A program made the position numbers and the translations under genes. Below the pieces are notes generated by a model. The model was given only the letters and a program-made list of their open reading frames with translations. It was not told the DNA's origin and searched no databases. This document shows positions 2,933 through 31,657 of a stretch of DNA of 64,000 bases, in pieces. Position 1 is the stretch's first letter; each line of letters begins with the position of its first letter. The stretch lies in the NCBI GenBank assembly GCA_965112155.1, contig OZ218098.1; one strand, written 5' to 3'. This DNA comes from Podarcis liolepis (lineage: Eukaryota).

Positions 2933-3100
2933 ACCTTCCGGTCGTGTTTGCCAATCCGTACAATGATGTCGTCTTTAGTGAAATTCTTGTCCCATGGTGG
3001 GTAGAAGATGCAGTGGGCAGCAGTTAGGATCCAGCGATTACTGATGAGACTGGCTCCACATAGCAGCTCCTGGGGGCTCTTCCTGAAGAGCATCACTTGC
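2933..3100 (-). CDS. F2: F2 exon 10 (catalytic His57, 60-loop)
   Basis: ttctag|G...GT|gtaaga; [55 protein letters not shown]; 168 nt. Confidence 0.97.
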
Positions 3101-3382: not shown

Positions 3383-3509
3383 CACGGGGAGCTGCCTTTT
3401 TCAGCATCGGATCCCTTCACAATTCGGCCTGCCAGATAGGAGTCCAGCAGCTCCTGCTCAGTCTTATCAGATACGTGCAGCTTCTCAAACAGAGGACGGG
3501 AACCACAGT
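3383..3509 (-). CDS. F2: F2 exon 9 (A chain, second FXa site, B-chain N-terminus)
   Basis: ttccag|AC...TG|gtaagc; [29 protein letters not shown]|[14 protein letters not shown]; 127 nt. Confidence 0.96.
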
Positions 3510-4182
3510 CTGGAAATACAGATCCATTCTTCTGTAACTACCCAGTTCTCAAATATGAACATATCTTTCATAAGCTAGCATTTCTGCTACAAGAAGATAA
3601 TAATTGGTGGTGACTAAGACATTGACCCGGAGCTGGAATTTTATCTCATCTTGTTGGAAAAGTGAATAATGGGAATTGATTTGGAGCATAGGTTCAGTCC
3701 TGGACAGTCTATATAAAATGCTGTTTTTATTCCTTTCAAAAGGTTTACATGAGTGCCAGCTAGATTATCGGACTTATGCTATTCCACCCTTAAGTTAAGG
3801 GATGCTAAACTCTGGCTGGATAGGACCATGTCTGAATGGATGGGGAGAGCATCCCCTTGTAGCCCACCTCCTGAACATTCTGGGGGATCTTCTGGTTAGA
3901 TGCTTCTGTTACAGCTCTGATCTCGCTGGGGAATGGACAGGGTCATCAACAGTATCACCCCTAAGTGCCCACTCTGGCACTGCGGAGCCTGAAACACACT
4001 TGGTTCTCCAGTGAGCTTTGGACAACGAAACAGGTCATGTGACCGCAACAGTACAAGTGGCATCTTGCACCAAGGCCAACCAAGTACAGGTCAGAGCATG
4101 TGACACCATTGTGCCCTTGGGTAGCCGTCTGGCAGAGGTGTTTTTTTGGGGTTTTTTGAGCTAGTGAATGTTGGCTGCTGTT

Positions 4183-4375
4183 AGTTAGTTAGTTAGTATA
4201 CCGTCCTTCGTTCACAATATAAAAATACAAAATGAGAACACAAAATACATAATAAACAAACCAATAAGTCCCCTCCCACAAAAACACTTAAAAGGATATA
4301 GGATGTTAATCAGCCATAGGCCTGGTTGAAAAGGAATGTTTTCGCCTGGCATCTAAAGGTGTACAAGGAAGGCTG
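4183..4375 (-). mobile_element. LINE (L2-like) 3' fragment
   Basis: (TTAG)n tail followed by ...ggaatgttttcgcctggcatctaaaggt; family assigned from recalled similarity. Confidence 0.45.
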
Positions 4376-4422
4376 TGAGTGCTTGGAAAGTTTCTGATCA
4401 ATTAAAAAGGTGCCACTGATTA

Positions 4423-6583
4423 CCGTATTTTTCGCCCCATAAGACGCACTTTTTCCTCTCCAAAAATGAAGAGGAAATCGGGGGTGCGTCTTATGGGGCG
4501 AATGCCTGCAAGCCTCGCGCCCTCGGCAGGAGGTCCCACCGGGTGTGCGAGGCTTGGGGCGGCAGCCTGTCGCCCGAAGCACGGGGAGCCCTCGGGAGGG
4601 CTCCCCCTGCTTCGGGCGAGTGTCTGCAAGCCTCGCGCACCCGGCAGGAGGTCCCACTGGGTGCGCGAGGCTTGGGGCGGCAGCGGACTTCTAGCTTCTA
4701 GGTGCGCGCAAGCAGTCCGCTGCCGCCCCAAGCCTGGCGCACCCGGCAGGGGGTGCGCGAGGCTTGGGGCGGCAGCGGACTGCTTGCGCGCACCTAGAAG
4801 CTAGCAGTCCGCTGCCGCCCCAAGCCTGGTGCACCCGCAGGAGGTCCCACCGGGTGCGCCAGGCTTGGGGCGGCAGCGGACTGCTAGCTTCTAGGTGCGC
4901 GCAAGCAGTCCGCTGCCGTCCCAAGCCTGGTGCACCCGGCAGGGGGTGCGCGAGGCTTGGGGCGGCAGCGGACTGCTTGCGCGCACCTAGAAGCTAGCAG
5001 TCCGCTGCCGCCCCAAGCCTGGCGCACCCGGTGGGACCTCCTGCCGGGTGCGCCAGGCTTGGGGCGGCAGCGGACTGCTAGCTTCTAGGTGCGCGCAAGC
5101 AGTCCGCTGCCGCCCCAAGCCTCGCGCACCGCCAGGCTTGGGGCGGCAGCGGACTGCTTGCGCACCCCCTGCCGGGTGCACCAGGCTTGGGACGGCAGCG
5201 GACTGCTTGCGCGCACCTAGAAGCTAGCAGTCCGCTGCCGCCCCAAGCCTGGCGCACCCGGTGGGACCTCCTGCGGGTGCACCAGGCTTGGGGCGGCAGC
5301 GGACTGCTAGCTTCTAGGTGCGCGCAAGCAGTCCGCTGCCGCCCCAAGCCTCGCGCACCCCCTGCCGGGTGCGCGAGGCTTGGGGCGGCAGCGGACTGCT
5401 TGCGCGCACCTAGAAGCTAGCAGTCCGCTGCCGCCCCAAGCCTGGCGCACCCGGTGGGAGGTCAGTGCCGGGTGCGCCAGGCTTGGGGCGGCAGCGGACT
5501 GCTTGCGCGCACCTAGAAGCTAGCAGTCCGCTGCCGCCCCAAGCCTGGCGCACCCGCAGGAGGTCCCACTGGGTGCGCCAGGCTTGGGGCGGCAGCGGAC
5601 TGCTTGCGCGCACCTAGAAGCTAGCAGTCCGCTGCCGCCCCAAGCCTGGCGCACCCGCAGGAGGTCCCACCGGGTGCGCCAGGCTTGGGGCGGCAGCGGA
5701 CTGCTAGCTTCTAGGTGCGCGCAAGCAGTCCGCTGCCGCCCCAAGCCTGGCGGTGCGCGAGGCTTGGGGCGGCAGCGGACTGCTTGCGCGCACCTAGAAG
5801 CTAGCAGTCCGCTGCCGCCCCAAGCCTGGCGCACCCGGCAGGAGGTCCCACCGGGTGCGCCAGGCTTGGGGCGGCAGCGGACTGCTAGCTTCTAGGTGCG
5901 CGCAAGCAGTCCCCTGCCGCCCCAAGCCTGGCGCACCCGGCAGGGGGTGCGCGAGGCTTGGGGCGGCAGCGGACTGCTTGCGCGCACCTAGAAGCTAGCA
6001 GTCCGCTGCCGCCCCAAGCCTGGCGCACCCGGCAGGAGGTCCCACCGGGTGCGCCAGGCTTGGGGCGGCAGCGGACTGCTAGCTTCTAGGTGCGCGCAAG
6101 CAGTCCCCTGCCGCCCCAAGCCTGGCGCAACCGGTGGGACCTGCTGCCGGGTGCGCCAGGCTTGGGGCGGCAGCGGACTGCTTGCGCGCACCTAGAAGCT
6201 TGGGGCGCACTGAGCTCAGCACGCCCCAAGCTCCTGGTATAGCGCAGCGATCCGCTAGCCCTGGGAGAGCCCCGCGGCTCTCCCAGGGCTAGCGGACTGC
6301 TTGCCGGCACGCAGAAGCTTGGGGCGCACTGACCTCAGCTTGCCCCAAGCTTCTGGATTAGCGCAGGAGTCCGCTAGCCCTGGGAGAGGCGCCCCGCTCT
6401 CCCACGCTAGCGGAGACCTTGCCTGCACGCAGAAGCTTGGGGCGCGCTGAGCTCCGCACGCCCCAAGCTCCTGGTGTAGCGCAGCGCACCTGGGGGGGAA
6501 ATAAATTTTTTTCCCTTTATTTCCCCCCAAAAAATCTAGGTGCGTCTTATGGGCCGGTGCGTCTTATGGGGCGAAAAATACGG
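4423..6583. mobile_element. Non-autonomous Tc2/pogo-type DNA transposon with expanded foldback interior
   Basis: Perfect 27-bp TIR CCGTATTTTTCGCCCCATAAGACGCAC (4423-4449 and 6557-6583), TA on both flanks, subterminal GTGCGTCTTATGGG copies, no transposase ORF. Confidence 0.9.
4620..6200. repeat. GC-rich array of about 32 units in alternating orientation
   Basis: Core AGCAGTCCGCTGCCGCCCCAAGCCTGGCGCACC and its reverse complement alternate almost strictly (copies counted by eye). Confidence 0.95.
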
Positions 6584-6996
6584 TATATATTCCTAATACC
6601 CCCTCCTACACACTGTGGTTAGCAGCCACTGTCTGAAAAGAGACATTTCCCTCCCCCCATTCACTCTGGAGGAATTGCCTCCTCAAAAATTATAGTCTGC
6701 TTCTTGCTTCAGCAGAACCGGGTTGAGCCATTCTCAGGCAGTGTGTGCTTGAGAAGCAGCTGGCACTGAATTGACATCAGGTTCTTTCATCAGACGGCAT
6801 CTCCCTCACCGAGGCAAGTCAGGGCCACAGGAGAAATGGGATTTCATCAGGTCCAACCCATGCCATAATTTTCCAAAAATGAGATAAACAGGAACATTCA
6901 CACCAAGTAGGAAAAAATTAGCCTGAGGAGAGTTTGGAGAGCTAACCGCTAACGGCTGCTTCAATGAAGGCAGGAAAGCAAACTGGATTCTAGAAG

Positions 6997-7151
6997 TAGA
7001 TAGGTAGCCGTGTTGGTCTGCCATAGTCAAAATAAAAAAAATTCCTTCCAGTAGCACCTTAAAGACCAACTAAGTTAGTTCTTGGTATGAGCTTTCGTGT
7101 GCATGCACACTTCTTCAGATACACGGTGCTACTGGAAGGAATTTTTTTATT
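6997..7151. mobile_element. Penelope-like retroelement terminal fragment with partial inversion
   Basis: Flanked by a 13-bp direct repeat TGGATTCTAGAAG (6984-6996 and 7152-7164); internal inverted copy of aaattccttccagtagcacc; motif gagctttcgtgtgcatgcacacttcttcaga. Confidence 0.7.
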
Positions 7152-7349
7152 TGGATTCTAGAAGACCCTGTTTGCTTTTCTGCCTTTGACCACAAGGTGG
7201 AGCCAGTAACCACAATCAGCAAGAAGAGAAACCATTCCAGCCCCAGTATTAAAAAAGGGTCCTATTATTCAGCAATGTGTTGTACCAAGAAGTTGTGGCT
7301 TAATTAATTGTTATTTTTATTTCTTTTGACTTTATCTTGGCCCTCTCAC

Positions 7350-7460
7350 CTGCTTCGCCTTGACCAAACGTCTTAGGATCAAAGAAGGTTTTGTGTTCTT
7401 GGACAGTAGTCCGGCCTGCTCTTTGCTCATCCTCATAATCGAAATCATCCACAAAACTTT
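7350..7460 (-). CDS. F2: F2 exon 8 (linker with first FXa site, start of A chain)
   Basis: tttcag|AA...G|gtgaga; SFVDDFDYEDEQRAGR|TTVQEHKTFFDPKTFGQGEA; 111 nt. Confidence 0.94.
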
Positions 7461-9402: not shown

Positions 9403-9539
9403 CACACACAGGCACAGCACACTCTTCTGCACGCACGACTGGGTTTCGGGTGTAGCACCAGGGACCCCTTGTGTTGTTGTTTGGATTCCTGCAGTAGTTT
9501 TCAGTGAGGTTGGCACCTGGATGGCTTGTCGTGTTGAAG
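9403..9539 (-). CDS. F2: F2 exon 6 (kringle 1, second half)
   Basis: ttttag|C...G|gtgagt; [45 protein letters not shown]; 137 nt. Confidence 0.96.
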
Positions 9540-14454: not shown

Positions 14455-14712
14455 CCGTATTTTTCGCTCTATAAGACACACCAGACCATAAGACACACCT
14501 AATTTGTGGAGGAGGAAAATATGAAAAAAATATTCTGAATTTCAGAAGCTAGAACAAGAAGAGGGATTGCTGTGCAGTGAAAGCAGCGATCCCTCTTGCT
14601 GTTCTGGCTTCTGGGATAGCTGTGCAGCCTGCATTCACTCCATAAGACCCACACACATTTCCCCTTACTTTTTAGGAGGGAAAAAGTGAGTCTTATAGAG
14701 CAAAAAATACGG
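14455..14712. mobile_element. Tc2/pogo-type MITE, short relative of the 4423-6583 element
   Basis: TIR CCGTATTTTTCGCTCTATAAGAC / GTCTTATAGAGCAAAAAATACGG; TA TSD. Confidence 0.88.
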
Positions 14713-15255: not shown

Positions 15256-15486
<231 letters not shown>

Positions 15487-31511: not shown

Positions 31512-31657
31512 CATAGAATCAAGAATTGTAGAGCTAGAAGGGAACTCGAGGGCCATCTGGTCCACCTCTCTGCAATGCAGGAATCTTTTGTCCAGTGTGG
31601 GGCTCGAACCCACAACCCTGAGATTAAGAGTCTCATGCTCTACCAACTCAGTTATTC
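31512..31657 (-). mobile_element. tRNA-Lys(CTT)-derived SINE with CR1 tail (POM/Squam1-like)
   Basis: Minus strand ...gagttggtagagcatgagactcttaatctcagggttgtgggttcgagccccac followed by a CR1-type tail ending gattctatg. Confidence 0.85.

Follow-up and report, generated by a model that had tools for sequence, protein, structure and literature searches.

MITEs with central tandem arrays include DTC84 of Donax trunculus, pearl/CvA of oysters, DINE-1, SGM, and mini-me (PMC3879986). Their arrays usually comprise no more than about six units, the repeat number varies between copies, and it has been suggested that palindromes inside the repeats act as hotspots at which the arrays change (PMC3879986). 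In the foldback elements FB and Tetris of Drosophila, tandem repeats lie inside long terminal inverted repeats (TIRs), and Tetris shares its ends with the short MITE DAIBAM (PMC4079207). In Anolis carolinensis, TcMar-N4_AC and TcMar-N6_AC are TA-flanked, non-autonomous elements that are said to resemble the Tc2-related DNA5_Xt (PMC3014272, Table 2). The element described here, which was identified in a 64,000-nucleotide stretch of a Podarcis liolepis contig (OZ218098.1; hereafter the window), fits the tandem-repeat MITEs and resembles the foldback elements. Different from the described kinds, however, it possesses a fully palindromic higher-order unit, its array grew in inverted blocks, and an array of about 16 units was still mobilized.

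The element occupied positions 4423–6583 (2161 bp) and was bounded by perfect 27-bp TIRs. The sequence CCGTATTTTTCGCCCCATAAGACGCAC, which begins CCGTATTTTTCG, was found at 4423–4449 on the plus strand and at 6557–6583 on the minus strand with 0 mismatches (27/27 identity; chance expectation, 0). The TIR core GGTGCGTCTTATGGGGCGAA was also present as an inner inverted copy at 4483–4502 (minus strand), where it forms a local hairpin with the 5′ TIR, and as an inner direct copy at 6539–6558 (plus strand). Immediately outside the two ends were TA dinucleotides at 4421–4422 and 6584–6585, the putative target-site duplication (TSD). The longest open reading frame (ORF) in the element was 115 amino acid residues, and none of the seven ORFs of at least 80 residues matched a Pfam family. 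A preliminary description of this locus had claimed perfect 27-bp TIRs, a TA at both borders and the absence of a transposase gene. All three were confirmed, although the empty alleles described below hold 11 letters at this site that were not predicted.

The GC content was 0.70–0.73 for the element and its array, and the CpG observed/expected ratios were 0.76 and 0.75, respectively. In the flanking kilobases, the GC content was 0.44 and the CpG ratio was 0.27. Thus, the CpGs of the array are mostly intact, as had been proposed before. With a GC content of 0.70, a CpG ratio of 0.76 and a length of 2161 bp, the element also falls within the sequence definition of a CpG island (GC > 0.5, ratio > 0.6, length > 200 bp). 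The youth of the element alone can account for its high CpG ratio.

The host gene F2 (prothrombin) is encoded on the minus strand, with the Gla exon near 15369, those for the kringles near 9499 and 8348, and that for His57 near 3024. Upstream of the host intron lies an exon (7350–7460, minus strand) that covers the linker between kringle 2 and the light chain, encodes ...TFFDPKTFGQGEA and is bordered by an AG acceptor and a GT donor. The downstream exon (3383–3509, minus strand) encodes the thrombin light chain and the beginning of the heavy chain (10 protein letters not shown, followed by ...IVKGSDAE). The host intron is 3840 nt long, and the element makes up 56% of it. By homology with the exon numbering of human F2, we take this intron to be intron 8, between F2 exons 8 and 9.

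Logan contigs of four sequencing runs (X1, X3, X8, and X17) were placed on positions 3600–7400, and word depths were obtained from them. In contigs of all four runs, 4422 was joined directly to 6585 with the element skipped. The bridging contigs were record 16 of X3 (185 nt to the left of the joint and 399 nt to its right), record 11 of X17 (134 and 399 nt), record 26 of X8 (84 and 399 nt), and record 2 of X1 (134 and 30 nt). Given that only a handful of differences from the window were listed for X1 in the unique flanks, X1 is from the same species or a very close relative. X3, X8, and X17 represent three related species whose flanks were about 1.3–2.8% different, of which X17 was about 2.8% different. 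The depth of the empty-allele contig of X1 was 73.8, similar to that of its flanks (54–106). The element is thus not fixed, being missing from another individual or from the other haplotype. As it is absent from a conspecific sample, it is not an essential part of F2. The empty site, the perfect TIRs and the intact CpGs together point to a very recent transposition. The preliminary description had regarded the locus as a young mobile element carrying an inverted-repeat array and had suggested an empty-site comparison with related species. The joint between 4422 and 6585 was recovered in X3, X8, and X17 as well as in X1, array words were found in the other species, and that reading is retained here.

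Each of the four bridging contigs held exactly 11 letters between 4422 and 6585, whereas a clean insertion at TA predicts 0. Therefore, the filled haplotype lacks about 11–12 bp beside the element. No filled allele was found in the runs examined, in which the best share of the words of the window was 0.56, and the insertion and the exact layout of the array are thus known from the assembly only. The window also differed from the runs elsewhere. At 7243 it lacks 11 bp that were found in all four runs (CTGTTCCAATA or CTGTGCCAATA), and substitutions private to the window were found at 3877, 7171, and 7286. This missing segment and the three private substitutions indicate that the assembled haplotype is distinct from that of X1.

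The interior of the element contains three repeated regions. A double-hairpin unit of about 118 bp, present in 1.6 copies with 92% identity, was found at 4496–4684 (copies 4496–4566 and 4614–4684). It is followed by the main palindromic array (4627–6200), which contains 32 alternating arms of 33 nt and has periods of about 101 and 193/194 bp. A 119-bp double-hairpin tandem array of 2.7 copies was found at 6172–6486, the linker of which shares homology with the P loops of the main array. The 23-nt arm core GGCTTGGGGCGGCAGCGGACTGC had 32 matches with no more than one mismatch, all of which were within 4669–6181 (expected, 0), and the cores differed at only 5 of 736 bases. Extended to 33 nt, the arms are near-identical and read GGGTGCGC[C/G]AGGCTTGGGGCGGCAGCGGACTGC. 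Their number and their GC-rich sequence agree with the roughly 32 copies of an arm of about 33 bp that had been noted before. The orientation of the arms alternates strictly between plus and minus. The sole exception is the pair 5135(+)/5184(+), where one arm was lost by deletion. A GC-box-like motif, GGGGCGG, was present in every arm (4669–6181).

TRF detected direct periods of about 101 bp (77–83% matches) and 193/194 bp (86–93% matches) across 4627–6200. The main array therefore has two aspects. The earlier statement that the repeats are not in tandem holds for the 33-nt arms, which alternate, but not for the array, which is a direct tandem repeat at about 101 and 193/194 bp. The array contains about 16 units of about 101 bp, each of which is a double palindrome that can be drawn as a double hairpin. 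The loop of the P hairpin is 20 nt long and was found both as TAGCTTCTAGGTGCGCGCAA and as the reverse complement of this sequence, and the tip of the Q hairpin occurs in versions of 36, 26, or 13 nt, also in both orientations. When compared by eye, the 26-nt Q spacer CCGGCAGGGGGTGCG may bear a loose resemblance to the CTCF core. The 194-bp higher-order unit consists of a half-unit and its inverted copy. Among the 25-mers of the array, 81% had a reverse-complement copy inside the array and 74% had a direct copy.

The array grew by direct tandem duplication, with periods of 101 and 194 bp, and by inverted duplication of blocks of at least 300 bp. Two inverted pairs were found, one of 303 nt that was 98% complementary and one of 329 nt that was 95% complementary. 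Inside the 303-nt pair, GGGACGG is common to arms 4905(−) and 5184(+), and GCACC is common to arms 4804(−) and 5285(+). Inside the 329-nt pair, the marker CGCACCGCC is common to arms 5135(+) and 5725(−), and the 13-nt spacer at 5122–5134 is the exact reverse complement of 5748–5760. Moreover, the marker CAGGGGAC is common to arms 5906(−) and 6100(−), in direct orientation and 194 bp apart. Given that each inverted block retains both copies, these events were inverted duplications and not in-place inversions. The inverted blocks are centered differently, at about 5055, 5345, and 5441. The 36/26/13-nt series of Q spacers represents deletions that are symmetric about the hairpin center. By analogy with the known behavior of palindromes during revision, such deletions would match nuclease trimming of an extruded hairpin tip. 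The stems also contain paired changes (CTCGCG/CGCGAG versus CTGGCG/CGCCAG), which are accounted for by inverted duplication, so that selection on structure is not needed to explain them. At extruded hairpins, template switching or fold-back repair may have generated the inverted duplications, for example in the course of replication or of gap repair after excision.

A second member of the same family was found at 14455–14712 on the minus strand, in the opposite orientation. This 258-bp MITE sits in an upstream F2 intron, is flanked by TA at either end, has one hairpin at its center and represents the family in its basic form. With the element it has about 92 nt of the 5′ end and about 86 nt of the 3′ end in common. 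Its TIRs had 3 and 5 mismatches at the two ends, mostly resulting from CpG decay. Its CpGs have gone to TG/CA, and its CpG ratio was 0.35.

In three runs, the summed word depth in the bins at the ends of the element was about 1.4–1.7 million, compared with about 54–136 for the single-copy flanks. In X3, the corresponding values were about 0.14–0.17 million and 11–15. Depths at the ends of about 10^4 times the single-copy value in four runs suggest that the copies are very numerous, word depth being a different quantity from copy number. The bins of the array were tens to hundreds of times the single-copy depth in four runs, including X17, whose flanks were the most diverged. Logan contigs cannot span the array, and the presence of arrays of exactly this type elsewhere is thus deduced from short fragments. 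The TIR had no match in the metagenome, viral and prokaryote collections that were scanned. The 23-mer of the arm was found in two bacterial contigs, which had the same sequence around the match and contained no array, and these were dismissed as chance matches.

The TA at the borders of both copies, their shared TIRs, the lack of a transposase and the empty site are all as expected of the Tc1/mariner-pogo superfamily. From its TSD and TIRs, the element is classified as a putative non-autonomous, MITE-derived member of that superfamily. A Tc2 affiliation is tentative at most and is suggested by the CCGTAT...ATAA pattern that the element has in common with the TIRs of TcMar-N4/N6 (CCGTATATACTCGAGTATAA) in a comparison by eye, in which both share the CCGTAT start and ATAA at positions 17–20, N4 having been related by its authors to a Tc2-like frog element (PMC3014272). 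Similar to the element, TcMar-N4/N6 have a lizard host, a TA TSD, more than 1000 copies and no autonomous partner, and their TIRs are about 23–25 bp long (PMC3014272). However, just 11 of the first 20 TIR positions agree, and a hairpin array is not described for TcMar-N4/N6. No autonomous partner of the family of the element was seen either.

Similar to the tandem-repeat MITEs, the element is non-autonomous, with short inverted-repeat ends and a central tandem array. TRF gave periods of 101, 193/194, and 119 bp in its interior, and the end modules of the element are common with those of the 258-bp copy. The length of 2161 bp, however, is beyond the miniature size (under about 600–800 bp); the copy in the window that has the basic form of the family measures 258 bp. 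Moreover, the arrays of tandem-repeat MITEs have a single orientation, whereas that of the element is built of about 16 double-palindrome units with inverted block duplications. Different from DTC84, whose TSD is AA, the TSD of the element is TA and its host is a lizard. Like the element, foldback elements are non-autonomous and modular, contain internal tandem repeats, are strongly self-complementary and exist in many rearranged forms, and the sharing of ends between DAIBAM and Tetris is paralleled by the 258-bp copy and the element. Foldback elements, however, have long TIRs built of repeats and fold about one center, whereas the element has 27-bp TIRs and many pairing registers. Its short TIRs, the dissimilarity of its 5′ and 3′ subterminal regions and the lack of a single symmetry center place it outside the definition of a foldback element.

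In the part of the lizard literature that was covered, no description of such an element was found. The literature on lizard MITEs, minisatellites and Tc2 provided nothing specific beyond the work of Novick et al. on Anolis, and a literature search for the TIR string returned only coincidences with C. elegans primers. The preliminary description had nominated the locus as the best candidate for an undescribed system, and this was not borne out: the family of which the element is a copy is very abundant, MITEs with arrays and foldback elements have been described (PMC3879986, PMC4079207), and the array is a direct tandem of a palindromic unit. No new kind of genetic system is revealed. The palindromic higher-order array is a variation on the theme of tandem-repeat MITEs and foldback elements.

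Given that F2 is on the minus strand, this strand is the sense of the pre-mRNA. A 951-nt piece of it (6200 down to 5250) had a predicted folding energy of −1057 kcal/mol, compared with −541 kcal/mol for shuffled sequences (z = −74), and its predicted fold consists of nested long-range duplexes. When one 196-nt higher-order unit was folded as DNA, a single stem of about 88 bp was predicted (−132 kcal/mol, z = −22). A row of short independent hairpins was considered as the preferred fold and was rejected, as the minimum-energy structures were long-range, near-perfect duplexes. Serial hairpins are thus predicted to be just one among many possible registers. According to these predictions, the pre-mRNA would gain a very stable long duplex from the element. 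The dsRNA and the cruciforms named in the preliminary description are likewise structures predicted from folding. No known RNA family was found in the element above the Rfam gathering score. There were 131 matches at E ≤ 1, and these were rejected as RNA genes because nearly all of them were to miRNA-precursor models, were sub-threshold and lay on both strands, as generic hairpins would.

We consider it highly probable that the locus represents a recent, not-yet-fixed insertion of an abundant TA-targeting, non-autonomous DNA transposon family that carried its array as cargo. A different order of events is improbable, in which the insertion was that of a short family member and slippage and fold-back events built the 1.6-kb array at this site afterwards. 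Palindromic arrays are unstable, and the youngest inverted block, at 98% identity, shows that some of the growth was recent. However, the insertion is very young, yet its units are 7–14% different at the higher-order period, and array-like words were present at tens to hundreds of times the single-copy depth in four runs, including that of the species with about 2.8% divergence. As the depth of the array was high in four runs and the period-193 units are only 86–93% alike, the array is older than the insertion. Similarly, the presence of this type of array in diverged species and the 7–14% difference among its units make it most likely that the array traveled as cargo. The finding of the empty allele alone in every run, in X1 at a flank-like depth (73.8), would also be expected if the assembly had misplaced or misbuilt the element or had given its array a wrong length or order. 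No run had more than 0.56 of the words of the window, the 11-letter mismatch at the site is odd, and palindromic arrays are difficult to assemble. An artefact, however, would not put a complete element with perfect TIRs exactly at a TA in collinear single-copy sequence, nor would it leave coherent markers of block-level history inside the array. We therefore regard such an origin as quite improbable.

Besides a recent insertion of a cargo-carrying transposon, the features of the array also bring to mind a functional system, in which it would serve as a regulatory CpG island or GC-box cluster, as a source of dsRNA or small RNAs, or as a transposase-binding array that promotes its own spread. 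Every arm carries GGGGCGG, the composition is that of a CpG island, and the predicted RNA duplex is extremely stable (−1057 kcal/mol for 951 nt, z = −74). Nevertheless, we find this very unlikely, because the locus is empty in the conspecific sample and in related species, the Rfam matches are sub-threshold generic hairpins on both strands, and complementary stem changes are expected from inverted duplication without selection. When the arms were compared with the TIR core as possible copies of a transposase-binding site, 179 of 2000 shuffles reached the observed alignment score. The similarity between arms and TIR is thus no better than that of shuffled sequences, and this candidate was rejected. 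Nothing in the results points to a host benefit of the element. Most likely, it is a passenger with a neutral or mildly deleterious effect, and its CpG-rich block has yet to decay.

For the recent insertion of an array-carrying transposon, the following course of events is proposed. The basic family member is about 260 bp long, with one hairpin between two TIR-bearing ends. Within the sublineage of the element, GC-rich double-hairpin units of about 118/119 bp would have taken over the interior, and the 1.6-kb palindromic array would have grown from one derivative of them. The whole 2.16-kb unit, including the array, was presumably mobilized in trans by a transposase encoded elsewhere and would have landed at a TA in the F2 intron between exons 8 and 9.

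If so, this lizard lineage has very recently had an active TA-targeting DNA transposon family, which is able to mobilize highly palindromic cargo longer than 2 kb. The array can also be read as a record of the growth and trimming of palindromes in the vertebrate germ line, by direct and inverted duplication and by deletion at the tips. Moreover, the presence/absence polymorphism in a strongly expressed liver gene would be a natural test case, in which a comparison of carriers with non-carriers could show how a 1.6-kb intronic duplex affects splicing, RNA editing and methylation. A broader proposal is that the family is currently active and that its interior is a self-propagating palindromic minisatellite, with fold-back making the arrays and transposition seeding kilobase-sized, CpG-rich, dsRNA-forming blocks into genes. 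We put this forward as a speculation that is unlikely to hold. If it were true, it would represent a route from MITE to inverted-repeat satellite that is undescribed in vertebrates and that might affect ADAR editing, small RNAs and genome stability.

Other repeats were found in the vicinity. Just left of the insertion site, about 4108–4361, is a high-copy repeat with an A-rich, imperfectly repeated tail, of which there are two copies (AAAATACAAAATGAGAACAC). Its word depth was about 10^5 in three runs and about 10^4 in X3, which had lower coverage. A 155-bp element at 6997–7151 is flanked by a perfect 13-bp target duplication, TGGATTCTAGAAG (region 6984–7164), and contains an internal 24-bp perfect inverted repeat. 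It had the highest word depth in the region, about 3–5 million in three runs. Contigs of the three related species skipped exactly 168 nt at this element, and no such contig was found in X1. Since it is skipped in three other species but not in X1, the 155-bp insertion is likely older than the 2.16-kb one. It is probably a species-specific young insertion in the F2 intron and is likely a SINE-like retroelement. A hammerhead-like CTGAAGA...GAAA motif in the 155-bp element was dropped, as it had no Rfam support. Farther away, a partial tRNA match was found at 31597–31654 on the minus strand (Rfam RF00005, 36.1 bits, model positions 8–63), which could be a tRNA-derived SINE head or a pseudogene.
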